This document shows positions 48,260 to 63,008 of a stretch of DNA of 64,000 bases, in pieces. Positions within the stretch are counted from its first letter, which is position 1. Each line of letters opens with the position of its first letter. The stretch covers positions 806,001 through 870,000 of the forward strand of contig OX337233.1 in the NCBI GenBank assembly GCA_946965045.2. Direction: 5' to 3'. This DNA is from Epithemia pelagica. Taxonomy: Eukaryota; Protista; Bacillariophyta. A program made the translations under genes and the position numbers. The notes under the pieces were generated by a model. It made no database searches, had not been told where the DNA came from, and was given only the letters and a program-made list of their open reading frames with translations.

Positions 48260-50954
48260 CTACGAATAGTATACAGGTGCCCCTCCATTGCCCAGTAGAT
48301 TGCGGAGACTGTACTTGTCACTTTTCTTGACATCCAAGTACGTGTTCAGGACACGTCGGGTAATGAGGTAGACTTGTTCCACATTGTCGGGTGTCAATTT
48401 ACCATCCGGATTAATCGTTGGAAAGGCCACGAGAATCATTTGTTTGAGGACAGTGGGATTGATTTGGGCATTGTATCCGGCATCCCGAATGTAATCGGCA
48501 AACCATTGTCCCAACAATCGATGCGATTCGGCAATATCTTCGGGATCGGCCTCCCGCGATTGATTCATCAAGTTGCAAATATCTTCAATCTTGTCTTGAT
48601 AGTCGGGATCCGCCAAGCGGGCCAAGACTTGGTCGTTCCATCGTTTGCCAAATTCAAACGTGGCCCGGGCATTTTGGCGCAATTCGTCCAAGGCTTCCTT
48701 ATCTTCTTCATAGCTTCGCACACCGGGCAACAACATGTGTTTGCCTTGTTTGGCGCGTTCAATATTCAACAAATGCAAGGCTTCCGGATCGACAAAGGAT
48801 CCATTCAAGGCCCGTTGGACCAATTCTTCGTCTTCTCCTTCCAAATACTTCTTTTCTTGCGGCACCTTGGGGGCCTTTTTGGAGGCACCCAAACCCGGTT
48901 TGGACATGAGCGGGTAATTGATAATGGAGGCCAAGACACTGACGCCAATCCCAATCCAAATGGCGGGATTGGTCCCAATGTAATCGGCCAACAATCCAAA
49001 GATCCACGGAGAAATGGCCATGCCCAAATTCATGACGGTATTGTTCAAGCCTTGCACATACCCAATCTTTTCTTCTGGCGCAATCAAATCCAACATGGGA
49101 CCGGTCGACAATTGACTCACCACGGTAAGGGGGAACCCCAAATACATGACAATGATAAAAAATGCATACATGCCCGTCGTGGCAGGCTGTCGAATATGAG
49201 TATATATAATGCATACAAACGAGAGGATCCCAAACGACACACGGCGTGAGCAAGATACAAACAAAGCAGAGAAAGGATATAACATCCAAAAAGAGCATGA
49301 GAATCTTAAAACCACCAACAACACAAACAAACAAACATTGAAAACGTACGCCATTGCCAATAAACAAGAGTGCCATGGTCAAAATGGCCGTGGCCAAATT
49401 GCCAAAGACGCATCCACCGGCGGCGCCAATCCAGGCAAAGACGCGGGGGGTAATCAAGGTTCCGGGAATGACCATGAGAGCGACCAAGACGGACAACCAT
49501 TGATAGGCCGAAATGCTCATGATTGGATCTTCCGGTGGTTCGGCATTGACAAAATCCAAATGATATTGTTCCAAGGCCAGGGGAGACAAGCACAGGGGAA
49601 ACAAGGCCGTCGATCCGACATTGTCGGCAAAGGCGCCCATGACAATATGCCACAAGGTCATATTGTCCAAGTGTTCGGGACGAGGAATGACAGTTTCATC
49701 ATCGTCATCATCATTGTCATTTTTCTTGGTGGCGTCGCCGTCTTCTGCCAGGTTACTTTTGGGAAGCGTTTCGTCGGCTTCTTCCGTGGCTTGTTCGACG
49801 TGTTCCACATCCTCCTCCTTGGTGGGAAGCAATCGTTCGTATTCGTCATCATCTTGAGCGAGTTTGTCATTGGCAATGGGTGTATACGTGGCACCCGGTC
49901 GTGGTTCAATCAAGTACCAGATATTAAGGACAAAGGATACCAGGACAAAGGCGGCGCCCAAAAAGAGGGGGGTAAACAAGCCGGAATCATTCATGAGAAT
50001 GGCAAAAATGCCACCGCCGGAATTGCCCAAGACATAATATCCAACAATGACGGACAGGGCATCTTGTTTTTCCTTTTTGGTCGTAAAGACATCGCCGACA
50101 TAGGCCATGGCCACGGGTAGGGTACCCTTGAACAAGCCGGCGGCAAAACTGGCGGCACAAAAGCCCCAAAAGGTTTTGCGAGCGGCATACATAACGACGG
50201 ATCCAATACAGGCACCGACGGAACTCACTTGAATAATGTGTTTGCGTCCCAGGCGATCGGACCAATTGCCGGTAAAAATCGAGGCAATGGCCACTCCCAT
50301 GAGACTGGACAGGGGCAAAAAGTACGTGGCGGAATTAAAATCAAAAGGATCGGTATCGGGAAAGGAATCCTCATTGGCATCGGGCGTTGCCATGATGGCA
50401 AAATTGGGATTGAGCAATTTGGTATTAATGGCCGAGGCCACGACATTGAATTGCAAGGCCCACAAACTGTATTTCAGAGCCGTTTCGTCCGTGGCCAAGT
50501 CTTGTCCCCGTTGGACGCCTTTCTGACCCCAATTCTGGGGATGCCACAAGGCGTGCAAACTACTCGAGGCCTTGGCCCACAGCGAATCGCGCTCTTTTGT
50601 AGTGTCTTGAAATTCGTCCAAGGGAACTTCTTCGGCTTCACCATCATGGTCGACTGTTTCCACCTCGGCCGCTGATGGATCATCGTCCTTGGTGGGTGGA
50701 TCTTGTGGAGGAACAGCTGCTGGCACCACGGGTTCCTCATCATTCGCCTCCTCAGTTTGTGGTGGAGCAGCACCCGCAGCATCGACTTCGACACTTTCTT
50801 CGGCCATGGCGACATCGGTCGCCGTGGGTTCGACGCCTTGATTGTTTGGATTGTCGCCATGACTGGTATCGTCAATGTCGACACCGGTCGAAAAGACAAT
50901 TTCGGTAGCGTCTTCCTCTTGCACCACTGGTTGCGGCTGTGGCTGTTCCGCCAT
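48260..50954 (-). CDS. Major facilitator superfamily transporter with long C-terminal cytosolic extension (2 exons)
   Basis: Exons 50954-49350 and 49186-48260; phase-0 intron GTACGT...ACAG of 163 nt. MFS motif A GNWSDRLGRKHII, PVAMAYVGDVF, DLIAPEEKIGYVQGLNN, IFGLLAD; multiple TM helices. Confidence 0.9.
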
Positions 50955-51071
50955 GGTGTTTGTGGTTGTCACTGTTGTTTTATTTGCTAGTGTGGAACCG
51001 ATTCACCTTTTTCTCTCTCTCTCTCTCGTTTTCGTAGTCAACTGTCGAGTTGGTCGAGCACGACCGCTGAT

Positions 51072-51087
51072 CCTCGGGGGGGATGTA
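51072..51087. repeat. Left end of Crypton: direct repeat CCTCGG + inverted arm GGGGGATGTA
   Basis: Read directly: tcctcggggg ggatgta at 51071-51087. Confidence 0.85.
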
Positions 51088-51567
51088 TTCCCCCCGCACG
51101 TGCCTAGTTACTATAGCCCGAATTTTTACTGTACTCAAATTTTCTTTTTAGTGTATTTTAAGTAAAATTTTCGGTCGTGGGAAAAACCGAAACAATGAGG
51201 CGAACGGAAACCGTCACAAAATGAGCCGAAATAGACCACGAAAAACAAACCGCGTGCAACAACAGCAACAACAATAGCAACAAGAACAACAATAGCAACA
51301 AGAACAAACAACAGCAGAGCCAGGACAAAGACAATGTAACAAAAAGGACATCACAACCAACCAGACCAAAGGATAAAGGCGAGACATGAAGACCAACCAA
51401 AGAGAGACACAAGGCGAGACAAGTCGACAACCAAAGAAGGAAGGCAAGGCAGAGGAAGGCTAAGACAAAGGCAAGACAAAGCAAAAACAACAGATAGCAC
51501 CAGAAAAAACAGAAATCGAAGAGAGCCATTAAGAGACAACAATCAACAAGGAATAGGGAGGGTGAAT

Positions 51568-51633
51568 GCATTCGAGGAGGACCAAAATCAAAGAGAAACG
51601 GCATTCGAGAAGGACCAAAATCAAAGAGAAATC
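51568..51633. repeat. 33-bp tandem duplication inside the element
   Basis: gcattcgag(g/a)aggaccaaaatcaaagagaaa(cg/tc) x2. Confidence 0.85.
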
Positions 51634-51828
51634 AAGATTAAGGTTAGACATGCCTTTGGAAAGAACACAGCAATCAAGAAGGAACAGCAAAAGACAAACT
51701 TACCTATGGATTTGTAGCGAACATCACAAAGAGCTCAAGCATCAACCTGTTAAGACGAAGATGGTGAGAGAATAGCAATAGACAGACAGCAAATCAAACA
51801 AAGTAACTTACCCATTTCATTCTGTCAT

Positions 51829-54613
51829 TCAGTAGTGACGACCCCCGTGGTTGTAATGGTAGTGATCACCGCCATGTCGGTGATAGCCACTGTGGTGGTT
51901 GCCGTGGTTAGGCCACGAAGAAGATGCAGGATACTGACGTGGAGGCGGTGGTGGCGAGGAATGATGGTGATAATGATGGACCGTTGGGCCATTCACACGG
52001 GACGAAGGAACAGGAGGAGGTGGCGAATATGATCGAGGAGGGGGTGGCGGAGGGGAAGGCCCGCGGTAATGATTGTAACGGGGTCCATACGATGGTGGAG
52101 GTGGAGGAGGAGTCCACCCACCATGGTTACGATCGCTCGAATGGTAGGAGTACGATCGAGAATGAGGGGGAGGAGGAGGAGGCGACCGATTGTAGTGGTT
52201 GTCGCGTTGGTGGTAGTGACTGCGACTCTCGTTGCGCTGGTAGTTGTGGTGGTAGTTGTCGTGTTGGTGATGAGAGTGTGTGGTGTTTGTTGTATTGTTG
52301 TTGTCCCATGCAGAAGGAGGAAGGAGCGGGGGTGGTTCGTCCTCGTCGTCTTTTTTCGCGGCTACTGGTGGAGATTTTTTCTTAGGTTCCTCTGAAACGA
52401 GAACAGTAGAGAGGTAAGATACAGAAGTAGTAACAACATGCATCAGTCAGACAACAACGTACCTTTTTTGGTTTGTTCTTCGTCATCGGATGGCGTGTAC
52501 CAATGGGCCGTCACTGCCTTCTGTTTCGAGTGGTCCGTCACTTCTTGATACTCAAAGTTGATCTTTTCACCCTTGTGGCGGCCGTTATTCGTTGCAAGAG
52601 GTTGAGGAACGCCCGAGTTCGCAACCGTGGTGATCCCAGTTCTCCGAGCGGAACGACCAGTAAAGTTGCCGGTTCCTTCGAAACCACAACGCTTAGCCAA
52701 CTCTTTCGTGTTGCGCGCAGCGAAATTTTCGCCCAACTTTCCACCAGGACGCATGCCAGTCAATGGATTAATCTTTGTTTTCGACATATCAGGAACAAGA
52801 TCCGTCCAGGCATGGTGAGTCGATCCGTCAGCGCGTGTGGCAATTACTTTGGCGGGTGCTTCACGAAGGAAGAAGAGCCCTTTCCAACCCGGCGGGTGGG
52901 CAACTCTACGGTACTCCATGACCAGTTTGTAGGTGCTCCATGGATCCTTGGGGTTTTCCACAATCATGTTCCCTTTGCAATCCACTGCGCGCCGGAACGG
53001 AGGGTTGACAAGAGTCAATTTTACATTCTTATGGTGACCGGAGTCAAGAGGGATGATCGCCGCCTTACCAGCGAGATCGCCGTGCAAATCATCTAGACTT
53101 TTAACAAATAGAAAGTCTGTTACTTTTGCTAAATGCATCTGAGTAGAAACAACAAGCAGAGGTGAGAAGCGTGTGATCCATACGACAATCCAACGGATCG
53201 TGGACGTACCTCTAGACATCGAAAACTACAGTCACGGCAGACTTTGTAGAACACCATCATGAGGAGATCCTTGTAAATTTCGAACAGACGAAGTGGAGGA
53301 CTCGCATACTTTTGCATGGACTTCTCGTCGTTGAGGCAAACTCCGGCTCGTTTGGGAAGTCGGCCAAACTCAGAACGGACGGTGGCGGTTTCCGACCACA
53401 AGTTCTCCAAGTAGGCATGGTACGAGCCCTCCCCTTTGAGGTCCGACTGCGTGATCACGACTCCATTGGCTCGCAGGATGAAAAAGATGTGATTGAGCAC
53501 TTTGCCGGTCGTGTTTGGCTGGTAGTGATACTTGGGGTCGTGGGGATCGTGCTCCCCCTTTTTGTACCCAGCCATGCGCAGATTCATGCAGAAAATCATG
53601 CAGAGAGAATTCAACAACCTAAGTTTGCCACGAGTAATACCCCCCCCCCCCCCCCCGAGAGCAACAAAAAGCTTGGGCACCTTCAAATTTTCGCCCTTTT
53701 CAGTATCAGGATCAATGATGGGCGCCGCGAGTCCTCTATAGTGTTTATGGCGACGGAGAATGTCCAAGAATCGTTTGAAAGAGTCCGCCTTGGCCTTGTT
53801 GTACGACTCGGAGTTCTGCGAGAGCTTGCGAACGTCGTACTTGTGGTTCTCGTCTTCGTATACATCCTCGCTGATGCGAGCAAAGGTGTTCCAGTACTGA
53901 ATACTGTCCTTGGTGTGTGGCACATCCACGGGGAGTTTTTGATACTCCGCAATCATCAGCTCGCCATCCTCATTTTCGGTCACATGTCTCTGCTTGACGC
54001 ATGCCATGGCAATGGTTCGTGTATCGAGTGGAGATGGGGGACCAATGGCAGCAGGAGGATGATGTTCGTCCAGTGGTTCCTCGTCGTCCGTATCTTCCAA
54101 CAGGTGGTACCAATCGTCTTCATCTTCATCGTCATCGTCCCTGAAAGAAAGAACGACATTCGTGTGAGACACAACAATCATACAAAAGAAGGGAGTTTCT
54201 CATCCTCAACTTACTCCGGAAGATAAGGAACAAGAGGAGGAAGACGATCGTCTTCTTCGTCGTCGTCTTCCTCGTCGAAAAGGGAAGGACGATCCTTCTT
54301 CCCATTGGTGCTGAAAAAGAGGAGGCCATTCTTGTCAGACACAACAATCATACAGAAAAGAAGACGGCAATGATGATCCAACAACTTACCTTTCTTTCGG
54401 GTGAAGATGGTGACGAGGAGGAGGAGGGACGTTTTCCTTCCCATTGTCGACGGTGGGAGGAGGAAGTTTCTTCTTCGGATGAACCTTCTTTGTAACCTTC
54501 CGAACAGGAGGGCGAGGAATGTCGTCTTCCTCTTCATCGCGGTACCTCTTCTTGGCTGCTGCAGCAGCAGCTTGGCGTTTAGATCGACGGGGGCGGAGCG
54601 GAGTCTTGGCCAT
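51829..54613 (-). CDS. Tyrosine recombinase (Crypton/DUF3504-like), 5 exons, ~829 aa
   Basis: Exons 54613-54390, 54310-54215, 54140-53210, 53138-52463, 52391-51829; introns of 79, 74, 71 and 71 nt, all GT-AG and phase-consistent; total 830 codons. Motifs: YQPNTTGKVLNHIF (core-binding), SFRCLEMH (Arg I), HHKN (Lys), FTGRSARRTGIT (Arg II), GRH, INFEY (Tyr nucleophile). Confidence 0.85.
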
Positions 54614-55325
54614 GGTCTTTCGTTTCCTGCAATGCGATGCAAAAATGGCAATGGAAGAAAAAGTGTGAGGTTTGTTTTGCACGGTAAACACAGCAGCGAA
54701 TTCAAAAATGGATGAGGCGGGGCACGCGCGCAGGAAGAAAAAGGAAGGAAGGAAGAGTCGCAGGAAGGAAGACTGGTCGACAATGACGAAAAACAACAAT
54801 CAAACTTACATTTTCTCCAACTTGGCAAGGTACCAAGGATCGGAATGAACACTGTGAGCGTTGGTGTCGCTCCCAGTGCATTCATCCATCTTTGGAACGA
54901 AGGTACCGTCCAAAGGTACGAAGGCGAGTGAGATGGCGTCCGACGAGGATGAACACAACGATAAAGACGACGAAGACGATGAACACGACGACAAAGACGA
55001 CGAAGAAGACGCAATGGAGATAGGAGAAGACACAATGCCACGATGTCCCTTGTCCTTGGAAGGCATGGGGCTGACAACGGCCGTAGGAGGTTTCGTCATG
55101 GTCAGGTCTTCCTTTTTCCAAACGAATGATGAAAACACAAAACACAACGCCCAACACACAAATGCGGCCACTTTATCTGCTTGGAAACTCGTAGCTCCTA
55201 AGTAACCTCTAAGTATATTTGTGAGTCCTAATTAGATTGTTCCTAATTGTCGTAAGTAATCTTTCTTTACAATGGTACTGTTTTCCTATGTATTCCAAAC
55301 AATTAGAAAACTCAACGTACTTTAT

Positions 55326-55341
55326 TACATCCCCCCCTCGG
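55326..55341. repeat. Right end of Crypton: inverted arm TACATCCCCC + direct repeat CCTCGG
   Basis: Read directly: tacat ccccccc tcgg at 55326-55341. Confidence 0.85.
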
Positions 55342-55355
55342 ACGCAACGGACGCC

Positions 55356-55558
55356 TATGACATTTGCTGCTCGGAACGCTTCTCGTCGGGGGCTCGTCGG
55401 GGCGTAACTCCTCGAAGGGCAATAGGTCCTCGTCGTGGACTGCCCCTATATCCGCTGACGCGGGGGACATTCCACTCCTCGGACCTATTGCCCTTCTCGT
55501 CGTTACGCCCCTCCTCGTGCCTCCCTCCTCGAAGCTACTCCTCGCAGCAAATGTAATA
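55356..55558 (-). other. ~200-nt rod-like hairpin with nine tandem G.A internal loops
   Basis: Perfect stems ACATTTGCTGC/GCAGCAAATGT, GCTTC/GAAGC, GGGGCGTAAC/GTTACGCCCC, GAAGGGCAATAGGTCC/GGACCTATTGCCCTTC, GTGGA/TCCAC, CCGC/GCGG, separated by TC/TC mismatches (GA/GA on the minus strand). Confidence 0.85.
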
Positions 55559-58376
55559 TTACCACAAAGACCTCTAGGAAGATTGCTAGAGTGTCTCTTG
55601 GACGACTTGGAATGCCTGTGGAATCGTCCCAGCTGCTGCTCCCGACAGTGTGTGTTGTGGAGTGTGTGTGTTTCAGCAGGGTCCCTGTTCTGAAACCACC
55701 ACCACCACCACCACCACAAAAAAGATTTTCGTCGTCTTCCAAAATTTGGCCACGGTCTCGTTGTCGTCTTCGGGTTTCTGTGTTTGTGTAGTGTGTTGAT
55801 GTTGGGGGTATCTTTTGAGCACATTTTTGTGGGGGAGTGCGGCGCGCGCCGTTGGGGGTTGGGGTGTGGGTGTGGTGTCTGTCGTTGTACGTAGTGTACA
55901 ATAGTAGAGTCCCGTTTCTGTCGGGGTTCTCGTTTCTTGATCTTGGGTCGCACAAGGCTGTCTCGCGTGCAAGACGCCGGGCGAGTAGTGGACAAACGGT
56001 CGGACCACACATTCATCTCTCTCGTTGTTGCTCCGTCGACGCCGACAACCATGGAACCACACCAACGTTCCACCACCACCAACAACAACAACAACTCTTA
56101 TAACGAGGGCCACAAAGCAGATTCTCGTATGGAGACCAGAGAGAGAGAATCATTCGAACGAAAAAACTCGAGCTGTTGTGTGGGTTGTGAACCCCAGCAC
56201 AACAAGGCGAACAAAGAAACCCCAACACAAAAAGAGAGTGATTTCTCGACCCACACGAATACGAATCAAACGTTTGCCAACCACACAGTGACAGCTAGTA
56301 TTTCCTACATATATGTATGTGGCACAGTATCCAGAACCGGTAGAGTCCACATGACGTGGGTTTTTCCAGTCTGCCTCGAATGGACCATTGCTCGGGCGAT
56401 TCTTGCGGTGCTCCGCAGAGCTATTTCTATTAATTTGTAGAGGAGCCAAGTTCTGTTTCGTTTCCAAACAGAGGCACGACGGGTTACGCCTCTGCAATAG
56501 TACCAGTATGCTACAGCATCCGGTAACTATTACTCCACCAGATGGACCTTTGGTCAGATTACCTCCGTCTTGTAGTACTAGATGGCCTTGTTGTCGTTCC
56601 GTAACTCTGGCACAGAAAATGTTTGTTTTATTGCTTCCCCATGCAACGTTTCCCTTGTCGACGAAATCTGCACAACCACTAGTACGGCTAGATCACAAAC
56701 AGCAAGCCACTTTGCCAGCAAGCAAGCTCGTAAAACACACACAAGGGTCCAGCAACGACAGCAACATCGCGCCACCTACCATCGCATAAGGCTCCATACC
56801 ACCATCATACATTCTTCTCGTCTTTATTTTATCACTCGAACCTACACGTTATTCTTCTTCCTTGTCTCAACTGGCAATCGATGAACGTCGGTGACTCCGA
56901 ATACACTTACTGTTCCCGGCCTTGTTGTTTTCAGATTTTCGCGCTTGTCGTTACCACGGATCCTTATCCCGCCGTTTGGTTTCTGATTTTTCGTCGTGTT
57001 CTTTTGTAGCCACCGTACACATGAGACATGTTCGCCGAGTAAACGACGTTCGGTAAAGCAGCACAAGGATGATACGTGTTGTACACGAGGGCGTCCTTCT
57101 TGTTGATCGTGTTGGATCGCCCGTGTCCTTCCTGTTACGCGAAAATAGCTGTCTTGTGTGGCAGCCCAGGCCTGTTGCATTGGAATTCCTGCCTTCACTG
57201 GTTTGTTGGTTGCATGTCAAGAAAGTTGGACACACAAGGGACCAAATACCAGACACTTTTCGGTGGTATTTGCTCCCCTGAAAGTAAGGGTAACCTGATT
57301 ACATGTACCATTTTCCAGTCAAGTCTACGGAGTTGCATGTGCTCGGGGTGACTGGGGGCAATCACACGTGTCCATTCAAATCGAGAGATAATTATTTGAT
57401 GCTCGGTTGACATGGAGGCAGTCACAAATGCCTCGAGATATGTCTCTTACGGATAAGGGCATGCCGATGAAAGCAACACTAGGGCTTGCCAAAGGAAAGA
57501 CTCTTATTTTGATACCTGCCATGCACTCGTATTCCTGAGGTCATTGTGCAATTCACCACTTGTCCTTTGATTCATGAACAGAATGTGTTCATGTATTGAA
57601 ACTTTGTTTTGGTCGCCCTGGTCGTTGCCCCGGACATTTGTTCTTGTGAAGAGACCATGATCAGTGATAGCCAACTGGATACTTGACTTCGGAGTTCGGA
57701 GAAAGCAAAAACGTACAACCATTCTTCCGTATCAACACAACATGATGACGTTGTCTAGTCACTCACCGATCAAAGTTCCAAGTGAAGACCCCCTTGCCCC
57801 GTGGTTCATCACAAATAAATCTTTGTTCTCTACTAGTTCCGAATTACAGATTGCCGAAAGACCCCAATCCCCCAAAACCAAAAACACGACATAAAATATA
57901 TCATATGACTTTTGATATGGCTGCGGTACTCGGGAGGCATAAATCAGGTGAGCTCCCTACCAGGTACAATGTCCCATTACATTTCCAGCTGAGTCATTCC
58001 AGAATGCCCAAGACTAGACAAAACTGAGATGTCATCTCTACTCGCTAGTTCGAAAGCCATTCGATGACATAATAGAGCTAACAGCCTATTCTTGTTCCAT
58101 CAAGGAGAAAAGAAGCATGATTAGTTTTCTATCACAATTTCACAAGCAGCATATTCGCAACACAAAAGACTACCGTATAGTGTGCTGATCTCTAGAAACG
58201 ACTCCAACTCAGGTATTTTCGTTGTGGATTTCGGAAATGCTACGATAGAAATATTATCTGCGGAAACTTACCTACTTTTGTATCCTATCTTATCCATGCA
58301 GGTGAAATTGAATGCCGACGATATGCTGAAAAACAGAAGGCTGTATGATATCTGCGAAGGCCATGTCAAGGTCAGC

Positions 58377-61300
58377 ATGGACAGTTCGATCCATTCCCCT
58401 TCTTCAAATGCTTCAAAAGTCTCGTGGCCCAGGAACTCTCGACTACATGTCCTCTTACTTGTGTTATCCTTTAAGACGCTTGGTTTTCTGACTGCCTGGG
58501 ACACTGTTGAAAAATTACCGTTTGCCGTTGCAGTTGCACAATCAAGTGGCATACAGAGCAATACAAACAGTCGGAGAGAGCTTCGACGATTTCCACCCAT
58601 CATTCACAAGGATATGTCTTGGATTCCTTTGGAGAAACCATCAAAAGCGATCCCAGAGGCACCCGGGCCGCAAGGCCGGGAGGCACACATGGAGATTGAT
58701 AAGAGCAGCATGACACAAATGGCTGAAAACAATCATGAAGAGGATAATGATCTAAGTCTTAATCGTATGTTGACCGAAGAGACTCGGGAAGAGGACGACA
58801 ATCATTGTATTCGCCAAGACTTGTTTGAAACTGACGAGCAACTTCAGCGTGTGCCGACAAAAACAGGAATGGCATTTTACCTCGGATCTAAAATCAAGCC
58901 GTTGCGAGTTGTTGGTATGGAACTTTCAGTGAACTCCGACCTGGGTGACCCAGAAGCATACGATTGGCGCATTCGAGTCTACGTCTCCAACAATACATAC
59001 AATGAACATGCCTTCGATGTCGATACGCATGAATATATCAAGGTAGCGGATGCGACTGCAGTGCTTCATCCAGATGGACAACGTGCCTTGATTCCTGCGC
59101 ATGCATTCCATCCTGTTTTCTTTGATCGCTTGCAACGCCGTACCATGTTCATTCGTGCTGCCGGGCCGTGGCTCAAGTACACCATCGACACCTTTGTCAA
59201 ACCCAAGGAGCAAGCCATCAAAGGCGATTTCATGACAATTTTTGCTGGCAGTCCAATGTTTTTCTACCCAGATCTGGAAACCCAAATCAATCAAGAAACT
59301 TCGGGTGAAGAGAACCCATTTGCCCTTCCGCCATCGTCCCCAGCTGCTATTACGTCAACATGGTTTGATGACAAGAATCAGGAATTCCCAGTTTCGCTTG
59401 ATCCCAAAACAGCATCAATTTTTTCTGGCAAGCTCCATCTCGAGTTTGAACGTGACATTTGCATCAATGAAGATGGAACGAATAACGCCGTCACGGTACC
59501 GCCTGAAAATATTGAGACTGAGTTAGAAATCCTTCATGTTGTCAACGCGACGTTGGGTGCCCCCGACTATCAGCGCATTGAAGAAGCAGTGAATAAGCAA
59601 GTGGACTGGATCCTTCAAAATAACCCTGCTTTGTCCGAGTTGGTAAATACCAGTCAAGTTCGCATGGAAGATTCATCCAAGGCTTTCTTCAGGAACTATG
59701 TAGGGAAGTGCTTGGTGCCTGATTGGATCTTGTGTAACTTCTTGGTGGTCAAAGTCACACTTCAACATGACGATACCGTGTCCTCTGGAGTCTTGAAGAG
59801 TCATGTATACACCCATTCTATCAGCGAGTTCTCCCGTGGTGCTGTCCTCCAGAATGTTCCGAGTACAATTGGTGCAGCGTATGTCGGGCTGACAACAGTA
59901 ACAGCTAATTTTCGAATGACCATCCATGGGATACCCGACAACATTCAAGAAATGGACAAGTACCAGACCGACTTTCTCCTTAACCAATTGACTGGTTTCT
60001 TGAACATGGAAATGCCAAATATCCATTCACAAGCTTTCACAATGAAATTAAACACTCAGCGATTTATCCAAACTAATAACGACCCCAAGACAAGAGGACG
60101 ACGTCAGTTACCAAGAGCAGCCTCCAACGCGGCGGCAGTTGACCCTCGAGCAATCCAAGAACGCCCAGGACAAAGTTTAGAACTCTCGGGTACAATCACA
60201 GGTGGCAACATTGTGTTTGAGGATGCCTCACAATTTGCCACACGTGTCGAAGAAGCCGTCGCCGATCAAGAGGCCGTCGACAAGTTCTTTGCTCATCTCA
60301 AATACAGGGCAAATTTGCCAGGTCCCCTATCAAAAAGAGAGCGCTACCATGTGTTTGAATGGATGTATTCTATGTCCAGTGATGTGGACAGTGCGGTCCG
60401 GGTACAGCCAGGCGGGGATGTAGATTCGGCAGGAAATGGACCTGGCGATTCTTCGAACGACATCATTTTAGACAAGCTGGGAGTTGACTTGTGGATTCTG
60501 GCTCTTGTGGCTGGCGTTGGGTCTTTGATCATCCTCCTTGTGTGCATGTGGTATGGGGTCCGATTGCTGTATCAGCCCAGTGGTCAGAACAAGACTTTGA
60601 ATGTCCCAGAAAGCGAGCCAACCGACGACCAGTGTGAAGCAGAATGCAACCCAAACTCTCGAGCCACTTCTTTGCGTCCTCAACTGCTCTTTCCATGGCA
60701 ATCGGAGCAACCGGACAGCGCATTTGTGGACCCACATGTTATATTGCAACCAGCAACTGGTTTATTACCTTCATGCATGGGCGGAACATCGCGTGGGTTT
60801 CAACTTCCATATGACATTCAAAGGAGCGACAATGTCCAGGAGGAGAAGCACGACGACGATGACGACGATACCACACGGCCACCACCAGAAATAGCCATTT
60901 TGTCTTCAGCTGACGTCCAGTACACGAGAAGCAATGCTGACGGTGATTTTTTGAGTACAGGAGAATCAAAGAAGAAGAAAAAGAAGAAAAAATCAAAGGG
61001 CAAGAAGAAAAAGAAGAAAAGCACCTCTGACGGTAGCACGGACAATGGTGATAGTTCTCCGGAGGATGAAGACGACGCTGCCACGTATTTCTCGGTGGAT
61101 CCTACGGTTGAAGAGACCACAATGGGTACCGCTTCCATCACACGACAAGACGACGACGAGGAACAAATCATGACGGGACGAAACGCAAAGTCCATCACTC
61201 AGTCCCCAAGAACCAACTACGACATCCACAATTCGTCGGCGTTCCGAAATGACCATCCACCATCACCCGTTACACCTCGGCGAGATAACGTGAGTCCGAC

Positions 61301-63008
61301 TGGACCATACTTTACAACCATATCACCCGGCAAGACTCCGCCCGGACATCTTCTTTTTCATGGCAAACCTCGTGCTGCATCGACCATTGCACCACGACAG
61401 AGACGTCATGTATTGCCACCACTGACATTTTCCCCCATGCAACACGCACAACATTCTAAACAACGTCCATCTTCGTGGTCGCGTGGCCGTGGAGCTGCCG
61501 CCTCAGCCGCACCCAAGCCACCTCGGACATCCAACAACTTGCTTCGTGTGGGTGCCGGGCCCCTTCCCCCCAATATTCGTCCTTCTCGTGGCGTTGTCAA
61601 GGGTGGTGGCCCGGCGATCAAGCGACCCTTTGTTCCTCATGGCAGTCTCTTGTCGTCCAAGACAACCACAGAATGTGGTAAAGATTTGGATGATGATGAA
61701 GAAGAAGTAATCGAACTTTTTGATGACAATGAACATGGCACAAACCCAAGGCAAGTGCCTCGACCATACCAAAGCACCATGGGTCCAGCACCTGTGAGGT
61801 CATTACCTCGACCTGCACCGCCACGACGCATGTCCAACCATCAGCCCACTCTTCATGACAGTATGAACTACATGGAAGCTACAGTGCCAGTCAATGAACT
61901 TCGAGAGCAGACGAACCATCACCCCACGACGATGCGCCGTACATCCATGCCCCAAGGGAGTCACCCGGATGACACGGCTGCATCCACCAATTTTTATGGA
62001 AGCATGAATAGTATCGGGGATTTCTTTGTGGTGGAGCCACAAAGTGCTGTACCAGCACCAGCATCATCATTACCGCATGTTCCAGCCACAGCCGCTACTG
62101 CCGAGCAATCCCGTCGGGCCAGTATGAACAGCAGCATGGACAGTATTGGTCAAATCTTTGTCCAGGACACCAAAACACAAGACTTTGTCTCCCCCGTCCG
62201 ACGACTGCAAGGTCGACGAGCTTCGGCGTCGTACAACATAGCACAGCCACAGAAACCCATGAATTTGCATGGAAGCATGAACGGGAGCTTTTCCTTTTAC
62301 CCAGAGACAAGCCGCAGCCGAAGTAGTAGCATTGGATGGAATCCTCCTGCGCCATGTCATGGATCTACCAATCACCACCCCCACCACAGTTCCAGTAGCT
62401 TCGGATATTCTGAAGGTGATGGTGGAGGATTCGAGGATCCTTCCCATCCACGTCCACAACGACGACGTTCCTCCGCGGCATATAGCATGAGTCGACCTCA
62501 AAAACCCATGAATTTGCATGGTAGCATGACCAGCTTGGAGGGAGGATATCAAGCATACCACCCCCCGTCTCCGACACATTGCCCACCACAGCCACCAGCA
62601 CCAGCACCGCAACAACAACAGCAACGACGGCGATCGTCTGGTTTCTTTTCCAATTGGTTTGCTTCGTCACCTTCACCATCGTCTCCAGTCAAGCAAGGTG
62701 GCTTGCGACGTGGATCCATGAAGCAGGCTCTCCGTCCTCCATCAACATCCGGCCCACAACAACCAACAACAAGAATCTTCCCGACGGTAACACCAGTTTC
62801 CTATACCTTGTCCTCTTTGCGACGCATGACGACCGCACAACTAAAGCAGTGTCTTGAAGCCGCAGGAGTTGACTTTGATCCTCGTTATATTGTCGAAAAG
62901 GACGACCTGATTCGAGTCTTTTATGCCAGTGGCAAAATAGACATTCTCCCCGAAAACACGAGGAAGAGCAGCAACAACAACAAGAACAACAACAACATCC
63001 CGTTGTGA
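58377..63008 (+). CDS. Large type I membrane protein with long disordered cytoplasmic tail and C-terminal SAP/HeH-like module (start uncertain)
   Basis: 1608-aa open frame; signal-like segment LHVLLLVLSFKTLGFLTAW; ~700-aa ectodomain; single TM LWILALVAGVGSLIILLVCMWYGV; poly-Lys; repeated xLHGSM motifs; terminal MTTAQLKQCLEAAGVDFDPRYIVEKDDLIRVF. Confidence 0.8.
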   Translation: MDSSIHSPSSNASKVSWPRNSRLHVLLLVLSFKTLGFLTAWDTVEKLPFAVAVAQSSGIQSNTNSRRELRRFPPIIHKDMSWIPLEKPSKAIPEAPGPQGREAHMEIDKSSMTQMAENNHEEDNDLSLNRMLTEETREEDDNHCIRQDLFETDEQLQRVPTKTGMAFYLGSKIKPLRVVGMELSVNSDLGDPEAYDWRIRVYVSNNTYNEHAFDVDTHEYIKVADATAVLHPDGQRALIPAHAFHPVFFDRLQRRTMFIRAAGPWLKYTIDTFVKPKEQAIKGDFMTIFAGSPMFFYPDLETQINQETSGEENPFALPPSSPAAITSTWFDDKNQEFPVSLDPKTASIFSGKLHLEFERDICINEDGTNNAVTVPPENIETELEILHVVNATLGAPDYQRIEEAVNKQVDWILQNNPALSELVNTSQVRMEDSSKAFFRNYVGKCLVPDWILCNFLVVKVTLQHDDTVSSGVLKSHVYTHSISEFSRGAVLQNVPSTIGAAYVGLTTVTANFRMTIHGIPDNIQEMDKYQTDFLLNQLTGFLNMEMPNIHSQAFTMKLNTQRFIQTNNDPKTRGRRQLPRAASNAAAVDPRAIQERPGQSLELSGTITGGNIVFEDASQFATRVEEAVADQEAVDKFFAHLKYRANLPGPLSKRERYHVFEWMYSMSSDVDSAVRVQPGGDVDSAGNGPGDSSNDIILDKLGVDLWILALVAGVGSLIILLVCMWYGVRLLYQPSGQNKTLNVPESEPTDDQCEAECNPNSRATSLRPQLLFPWQSEQPDSAFVDPHVILQPATGLLPSCMGGTSRGFQLPYDIQRSDNVQEEKHDDDDDDTTRPPPEIAILSSADVQYTRSNADGDFLSTGESKKKKKKKKSKGKKKKKKSTSDGSTDNGDSSPEDEDDAATYFSVDPTVEETTMGTASITRQDDDEEQIMTGRNAKSITQSPRTNYDIHNSSAFRNDHPPSPVTPRRDNVSPTGPYFTTISPGKTPPGHLLFHGKPRAASTIAPRQRRHVLPPLTFSPMQHAQHSKQRPSSWSRGRGAAASAAPKPPRTSNNLLRVGAGPLPPNIRPSRGVVKGGGPAIKRPFVPHGSLLSSKTTTECGKDLDDDEEEVIELFDDNEHGTNPRQVPRPYQSTMGPAPVRSLPRPAPPRRMSNHQPTLHDSMNYMEATVPVNELREQTNHHPTTMRRTSMPQGSHPDDTAASTNFYGSMNSIGDFFVVEPQSAVPAPASSLPHVPATAATAEQSRRASMNSSMDSIGQIFVQDTKTQDFVSPVRRLQGRRASASYNIAQPQKPMNLHGSMNGSFSFYPETSRSRSSSIGWNPPAPCHGSTNHHPHHSSSSFGYSEGDGGGFEDPSHPRPQRRRSSAAYSMSRPQKPMNLHGSMTSLEGGYQAYHPPSPTHCPPQPPAPAPQQQQQRRRSSGFFSNWFASSPSPSSPVKQGGLRRGSMKQALRPPSTSGPQQPTTRIFPTVTPVSYTLSSLRRMTTAQLKQCLEAAGVDFDPRYIVEKDDLIRVFYASGKIDILPENTRKSSNNNKNNNNIPL

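Follow-up and report, generated by a model that had tools for sequence, protein, structure and literature searches.

A conserved hairpin of tandem G·A mismatches at the 5' end of a Crypton and the complementarity of its inner flank to the opposite element end

The imperfect hairpin at positions 55356 to 55558 (minus strand) of the window, by which we mean the whole 64,000-nucleotide stretch of DNA analyzed, is the conserved first 200 bases of a Crypton and not a neighbor of one. It was defined by folding both strands, by a structure walk and by conservation and covariation in five Crypton lineages (A to E). We see about an even chance that it is a 5'-terminal cis element that serves, as a folded strand, as a site for recombination or circularization.

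The earlier note had placed the hairpin next to the Crypton end and set the Crypton boundaries at 51072 and 55341. Two lines of evidence now place it within the element. Contigs from four publicly available DNA runs of this organism join position 51059 to 55561, skipping 4501 bases with two letters that fit either side, and a single 3.7-kb run contig covers both flanks. This joint represents an empty-site allele, and the insertion is therefore polymorphic and recent. In addition, the window is 97% identical to two other copies, L001 and L002, from 51060/51061 to 55566/55567, so the similarity spans the hairpin and does not stop at 55341. Taken together, the empty-site allele and the copy identity define the Crypton as 51060 to 55560 (4501 bp, gene on the minus strand), with the hairpin inside it and the hairpin foot (55558) 2 nt from the element end. 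A 2-nt ambiguity in the boundary makes 51062 to 55562 equally good. The two positions formerly taken as boundaries fall in internal boxes that pair across the joined ends, as described below. What stands of the previous proposal, that of an undescribed structured element tied to the tyrosine recombinase, is a selected and strand-asymmetric structure; the suggestions of a non-autonomous partner element or of a separate hairpin target are not supported, given the position inside the element that the empty-site allele and the copy homology indicate.

The same data bear on the possibility that the structure has no function, being either a relic left by a fold-back duplication or an element of fold-back or MITE type that is separate from the Crypton and happens to abut it, with arms homogenized by conversion and incidental G·A mismatches. 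In the empty site the hairpin and the gene are missing as one unit. A covariance-model search of 244 kb found the hairpin at the Crypton 5' end in 16 of 16 hairpin-bearing loci and found no hairpin away from a Crypton, in keeping with the co-occurrence that the earlier note had proposed as a test. An independent fold-back or MITE was rejected on these grounds.

With moderate confidence, we assign to the element a tyrosine recombinase that bears the catalytic signature of the family. The ORF for the catalytic domain (52443 to 53219, minus strand) carries R189-x-x-R192, H215 and Y224 (ORF numbering). These residues are near-invariant, and their spacings of 23 and 9 residues are those found in box II of Cre and XerD; at 189, arginine takes the place of the usual box II histidine. 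An upstream ORF (53129 to 54181, minus strand) contains the N-terminal region of the gene in a different frame, which implies an intron. An AlphaFold (AF2) model of the recombinase (pLDDT 77.5) matched Cre (residues 151-319, Z 7.4), XerA, QRICH1 and IntI at Z 6.4 to 7.4, and all 15 of the 15 VIA matches with Z of at least 5, as well as the 17 best Foldseek matches, were tyrosine recombinases or topoisomerase IB. As these Z scores are below 8, the structural support for a recombinase is moderate. The DUF3504 domain of QRICH1 is itself Crypton-derived (Kojima and Jurka, PMC3212892). No Pfam match was obtained for the recombinase ORF or the N-terminal ORFs, and a PDB sequence-profile search with the recombinase returned none. 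As leads only, the lineage B N-terminal ORF had language-model features of the DUF3435, NDC10_II, Phage_int_SAM and DUF3504 clusters, and one nearest cluster in the N-terminal ORF comparison was mostly diatom.

The split recombinase gene and low-complexity tails occupy the 4.5-kb element, in which we found no terminal inverted repeats, no long terminal repeats and no true target-site duplication. Nor did Pfam reveal a reverse transcriptase, an RNase H or any other transposase among the ORFs of 51060 to 55560 and the N-terminal ORFs of lineages B, D and E. An empty site, short direct repeats and no other enzyme fit a recently active Crypton, a DNA transposon encoding only a tyrosine recombinase. 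Membership of the CryptonS subgroup was rejected, judged on the termini: those of CryptonS are mostly TATGG (PMC3212892), whereas the ones found here are GT, GTA, GTAG or GTAGT, and the change from histidine to arginine in box II is a further difference.

Several other features were noted in and around the element. In contigs of runs X1, X3 and X5, position 51274 is joined directly to 54250, with loss of the intervening 2975 bases and, among them, the recombinase gene; the joint has high depth in X5 and just 21 letters on its shorter side, and may reflect an internal-deletion, non-autonomous derivative. An Asp/Glu-rich ORF of 114 aa lies antisense between the hairpin and the N-terminal ORF (54861 to 55205, plus strand). 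A gene is called at this position in L001 and L002 as well, possibly as low-complexity noise. Past the Crypton 3' end is a host transporter gene of the Major Facilitator Superfamily (48759 to 50972, minus strand; E 2e-23), and a 1608-aa ORF at 58182 to 63008 (plus strand) matched no Pfam family at E ≤0.01.

A protein search with the 258-aa ORF returned four clusters, all from one ENA assembly, and the loci and cluster members were then compared. Lineage A consists of the window, L001 and L002, lineage B of L003, L005 and L017 to L023, and lineage C of L004. Lineages D (L024) and E (L025 and L026) were found by a full HMMER search of representatives. The sample is therefore approximately five Crypton lineages of one assembly, with few independent events; the contigs of two P0019 loci (L027 and L028) were too short to include flanks. 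Recombinase identity to the window ranged from 96% down to approximately 40% over the lineages. In diverged copies the coding sequence was about 65% identical to the window, as compared to 79-82% for the hairpin and 77% for the other terminus. The rod lies upstream of the recombinase gene in all five lineages: at the 5' terminus, as set by copy comparison, in A, B and C, and behind the same terminal box in D and E. An exact-pattern scan of metagenomes yielded 11 loci (L006 to L016), about as many as we would roughly expect by chance for matches to 18 specified bases, and none of them had hairpin homology; the same kind of scan of viral sequences gave no match.

Two copies were seen to be broken within the rod. 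In L017 the lineage B hairpin (261-375 and 2497-2659) is split by an insertion of approximately 2.1 kb with an integrase (rve) gene, which indicates that a retrotransposon fragment landed inside it. At 55424, inside the hairpin stem, contigs of runs X1 to X3 diverge into unrelated sequence, so at least one other copy is interrupted or truncated at this point.

The crossover dinucleotide, AC on the plus strand and GT in the sense reading, lies at 55561 to 55562 and again at 51060 to 51061 (minus strand). It corresponds to the two-letter ambiguity of the empty-site joint and is common to the Crypton end and the target. Junction sequences place a 10-bp palindrome, GTAATATTAC, astride the element end (55553 to 55562, minus strand), and its last two plus-strand bases are this shared AC. 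The 5'-terminal 10-bp palindrome was GTAATATTAC in lineage A, GTAGTTCTAC in B and GTAATACTAC in C, and GTAAATCTAC is a further terminal palindrome among the other lineages. The repeat shared with the target was G or GT in A, GTA to GTAGT in B, GTA in C and GTAGT in E, a length of 1 to 5 nt as compared to 4 to 6 for published Cryptons. Lineage B targets were GTAG-N4-CTAC in five of seven independent insertions. This target is a short palindrome like the lineage B terminal palindrome, GTAG-TT-CTAC, and at the lineage B insertion sites (L005, L018, L019, L020 and L022) GGTA or GGTT usually precedes it.

Folded in silico, the hairpin formed a rod of approximately 200 nt with a z score of about -10. 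With DNA parameters, positions 55340 to 55575 gave a minimum free energy of -59.9 kcal/mol on the plus strand (z -9.4) and -66.9 kcal/mol on the minus strand (z -10.5), and none of 200 shuffles matched the fold energy of the hairpin. RNA parameters gave -112.1 and -138.8, respectively. The sense (minus) strand was thus stabler by 7 kcal/mol with DNA parameters and by 27 with RNA parameters.

A structure walk passed from an 11-bp outer stem to a single TC/TC loop at 55371/55542 and then to four doublets. Three of these read TCGTC/TCCTC on the plus strand (55383/55526, 55394/55512 and 55430/55476), and the fourth is flipped, TCCTC/TCGTC (55409/55497), with C55411-G55499 as its central pair. Every 2x2 loop of the window hairpin is TC/TC on the plus strand, which is GA/GA on the minus strand, giving nine GA/GA loops on the sense strand as one single and four GA-S-GA doublets. 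Five of the tandems are in CGAG/CGAG context. At the apex (55452 to 55463, minus strand) a 4-bp stem, CCGC/GCGG, closes a GTCA tetraloop on the sense strand; the plus strand reads CCGC-TGAC-GCGG and the minus strand C-GTCA-G. The apex is identical in lineages A and C, and that of lineage D is the same but inverted. The walk agrees with the earlier note on all of these points: the nine loops, the four doublets, the flipped pair 55411/55499, the five CGAG/CGAG contexts and the apex. Its suggestion to fold both strands was likewise rewarded, the minus strand being stabler by either set of parameters. One qualification concerns the doublet at 55394/55512, which in the window copy pairs only with a 2-nt bulge. 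L001, L002 and the run contigs carry two bases here that the window copy lacks, and all nine GA/GA loops are therefore clean in those copies.

Tandem G·A/A·G pairs in C-GA-G context are stable sheared pairs, as established by NMR and thermodynamic work. On the opposite (plus) strand the same places would have destabilizing T·C/C·T oppositions, so that only the gene-sense strand can form the G·A pairs of the rod. The sense reading alone also shows G·T wobbles, and no 1x1 loop is an A/C, which would be G·T on the other strand.

The helices of the rod are supported by covariation. RNAalifold on eight sequences predicted 54 pairs, 21 of which had compensatory double changes. In a covariance-model alignment of 12 sense-strand copies from the four alignable lineages, 98.8% of cells were paired and both-side changes occurred in 18 of 54 pairs, counts to be read as those of an alignment fitted to the model over few lineages, and of a DNA palindrome whose arms can also co-vary by arm-to-arm conversion without any single-strand function. 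None of 500 shuffles of this alignment reached any of five measures, and sliding the partner by 1-3 columns left at most four compensatory pairs in place of the 18 of 54. It had been foreseen that homologs might lack the GA/GA loops and show no covariation; instead, the loops are kept and the stems covary. Acidic-repeat coding sequence was rejected as a source of the pattern, as the ORFs over the hairpin are short or cross the element boundary and the changes are compensatory, not synonymous.

A per-column census identified the internal loops as the most conserved columns of the hairpin. The 2x2 loops of lineages A to D are GA/GA or else AA/GA and GA/AA, and of the 105 opposed positions that symmetric loops contributed in the junction folds of A, B, C and E described below, 84 were G·A or A·G. 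The stems of lineage E have no sequence in common with those of lineage A; its loops are nevertheless GA/GA or 8x8 loops, GACGAGGA/GACGAGGA, that resolve into the same C-GA-G tandems. As a further observation, L025 (3763-3790) and L026 (3903-3930) differ in the innermost loop, where an A to T change affects the second position of GACGAG in each of the two arms and replaces an A·A opposition by a T-A pair.

These loops also weigh on the reading without function. Palindrome arms are able to co-evolve by conversion, and some GA/GA sites of lineages B and D have become Watson-Crick TC/GA, the change expected from arm-templated correction. The same change shows that the mismatches can be lost and must be kept by selection: conversion would erase them, yet the same type of mismatch persists without shared stem sequence and occupies the best conserved columns. 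An inversion within the lineage D hairpin could also be counted in favor of the reading without function. In L024 (3487-3608) the innermost doublet is inverted, with TC/TC on the sense strand and a TTAC in place of the GTCA loop, while the outer loops remain in GA orientation. The palindrome center seems to have been flipped by recombination between the arms, and as a DNA-level event this means that G·A orientation is not absolute. Together with the TC/GA changes, it suggests that not every G·A site or orientation is obligatory. On balance, absence of function is largely refuted and we consider it very improbable.

The hairpin is only part of a larger predicted structure. In lineages A, B, C and E the 3'-terminal 30-40 nt of the element can pair with sequence just inside the hairpin. 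In the window the partners are a 3'-terminal box (51060 to 51087, minus strand) and an inner-flank box (55326 to 55355, minus strand), which contains the motif TCCGTTG (sense) and is conserved in lineages A, B and C. When the ends were joined in silico and the sense strand was folded, the rod gained approximately 33 pairs and reached -92 kcal/mol, forming a rod of about 290 nt with the crossover (GT, or GTAG in lineage B) at a conserved irregularity. Pairing of the two boxes adds a tenth GA/GA loop, in which the plus-strand TC at 51074-51075 lies opposite 55338-55339, and a T/T mismatch next to the crossover (A51063 and A55351 on the plus strand). The junction helix is TACATCCC(C/T)CCC in lineages A and B, TACCTAGGCAAC in lineage C and 20 nt long in lineage E. 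These three are unrelated in sequence, and each has a GA/GA or GAA/GA loop. In all four lineages the crossover falls in a small irregular segment flanked by a 6-bp helix (CARYGG/CCGTTG, G·T tolerated) and the outer stem of the hairpin, and it adjoins the T/T mismatch in A, B and E. As the 3' arm of the hairpin and the inner flank pair with both ends, they could act as a splint for extremities placed side by side. Lineage B is represented in this comparison by L020, since the minimum free energy fold of the L018 junction is an alternative one. In lineage D we found no convincing 3' partner of the inner flank (best alignment score 24), and L024 may be a decayed copy.

One possibility for these observations is that the sense rod acts as RNA, as a structured leader or non-coding RNA that regulates recombinase translation, binds a protein, or feeds or evades silencing as a hairpin RNA. 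The G·A orientation agrees with the sense strand of the gene, and the fold is very stable with RNA parameters and well ahead of the antisense fold. Tandem G·A pairs are also common protein-binding motifs in RNA. On the other hand, the start of the hairpin is 2-3 nt from the element end, too close for an internal promoter, and the promoter would have to lie outside. The rod also runs on through the DNA joint to the 3' terminus, and it is interrupted where the DNA crossover lies, as expected of DNA ends and not of transcript ends. In lineage B the long ORF is approximately 750 nt away from the hairpin. Known RNA families offered no counterpart. The best Rfam match to the hairpin, MIR1858, scored 37 bits against a gathering score of 137, and as these matches were sub-threshold and miRNA-shaped, a miRNA precursor or other known Rfam family was rejected. 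A K-turn was rejected as well, because it needs a 3-nt bulge followed by tandem G·A and no bulges adjoin the tandems. The position of the discontinuity and the lack of promoter space favor DNA, and we regard an RNA element as improbable.

Another possibility is that the site works as a duplex. About ten CGA(C/G)GAG motifs in one orientation could be iteron-like double-strand binding sites for the N-terminal domain of the Crypton protein or for a host factor, and could build an arm-type nucleoprotein complex by a duplex core, the 10-bp palindrome. Accessory arms are frequent among canonical tyrosine recombinases. The motifs are better conserved than the stems, and a short palindromic core and palindromic targets are present; these are compatible with ordinary double-strand recombination in which the rod is an accessory. 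A duplex site leaves unexplained why the spacers between the motifs are inverted repeats kept by compensatory change, and why complementarity between the 3' end and the inner flank is achieved by different sequences in each lineage. We therefore think a purely double-strand accessory site unlikely.

The reading that we prefer is that of a terminal site recombined as a folded strand. The first approximately 200 nt of the gene-sense strand, with helices kept by compensatory change, would fold into a rod, either as a single strand or by extrusion of a cruciform. We infer that this occurs in vivo and at the level of DNA, not RNA, and that the rod is a substrate of the recombinase. Once the ends are joined, or merely annealed, the rod would extend to approximately 290 nt and place the exchange point between two helices by the T/T mismatch; this would be the form in which the site is presented to the recombinase. 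Such a fold could bring the two ends together for circularization or excision and could mark the strand to be exchanged. The tandem G·A pairs would provide the strand choice, by stabilizing the sense fold, destabilizing the antisense fold and interrupting the duplex palindrome, and the short terminal palindrome would pair the element with GTAG-N4-CTAC-like targets. It could further be speculated that Cryptons move via single-stranded or strand-specifically processed DNA, the sense-strand rod splinting the termini and being cut and joined by the recombinase, as a eukaryotic counterpart of attC and CTXphi sites and an ancestor of the DIRS internal complementary region (ICR). This broader proposal is possible, and we hold it to be doubtful.

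The closest analog among known systems is the DIRS ICR (Cappello model; tested in PMC7192593), followed by the integron attC site. The ICR of DIRS-1 is an 88-bp segment complementary to both adjacent extremities and is essential for retrotransposition, and the DIRS-1 junction has a short repeat shared with the target (PMC7192593). Similarly, the Crypton has an internal segment complementary to both extremities side by side in lineages A, B, C and E, through which a single strand can bring the two ends to a "circle junction", and it encodes a tyrosine recombinase and has a short, species-specific junction repeat shared with the target. In contrast to DIRS-1, the complementary segment is approximately 135 nt (100 + 35) and abuts the 5' terminus, so that a hairpin forms, and its complement is imperfect and studded with tandem G·A where that of DIRS-1 is exact. 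The element lacks the reverse transcriptase, RNase H and inverted LTRs of DIRS, and its copies keep the intron. A DIRS element was accordingly rejected: the proposed working is ICR-like, but neither RT, RNase H nor long terminal repeats turned up.

Integron attC sites and the CTXphi attP(+) hairpin are folded single-strand substrates of tyrosine recombinases (PMC2727003, PDB 2a3v), and the folded attC sites show strand selection (PMC2727003). The Crypton hairpin appears to resemble attC in being an imperfect palindrome in which structure is conserved over sequence and one strand gives the fold. The crossover is near the hairpin foot in both, and the identity with the target is very short (G/TT in integrons, GT or GTAG here). 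Unlike attC, it occurs in a eukaryotic host and the rod measures 200-290 nt as compared to 57-141 nt. Its strand asymmetry arises from G·A tandems in symmetric 2x2 loops and not from extrahelical bases, and where attC has an unpaired central spacer, the crossover here has just small irregular loops and a T/T mismatch at its sides. The crossover also lies between rod parts from opposite element ends, and single-strand exchange by Cryptons is putative.

More distant likenesses are found in the subterminal hairpins of IS200/IS605 elements and the "bubble" hairpins of parvovirus telomeres. These too are imperfect terminal hairpins read from one strand with a cleavage site at the foot, and their asymmetric mismatches give strand or orientation choice. 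They differ in being served by HUH nucleases and in being much shorter or without repeated G·A modules.

In other respects the element resembles the Cryptons described before (Goodwin 2003; Kojima and Jurka 2011, PMC3212892): it encodes only a recombinase, has no TIRs, LTRs or real target-site duplication, carries short direct repeats at its termini, is present at low copy number and has an apparent stramenopile-type host. Published descriptions have Cryptons lacking TIRs and conserved non-coding sequence (PMC3212892, PMC13465315), and no hairpin or terminal structure is mentioned in the Crypton literature that we searched, which included these two papers. Judged against that literature, a conserved terminal hairpin, with a joined-end rod at the point of recombination, appears to be new for Cryptons.

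For a Crypton, these data define the precise termini, an empty-site allele, a target motif and an extensive conserved cis structure. We know of no experimental study of Crypton transposition, and because the geometry of the rod fixes where the crossover lies, the mechanism is open to direct tests that need oligonucleotides and a single purified protein. The C-GA-S-GA-G module, repeated along the rod, is in itself a natural, evolutionarily validated building block of tandem sheared-type G·A pairs. Should the rod function as a folded single strand, we would have in it the first case known to us of structure-specific tyrosine recombination in a eukaryote, and Cryptons would be tied in a concrete way to the ICR of DIRS retrotransposons.
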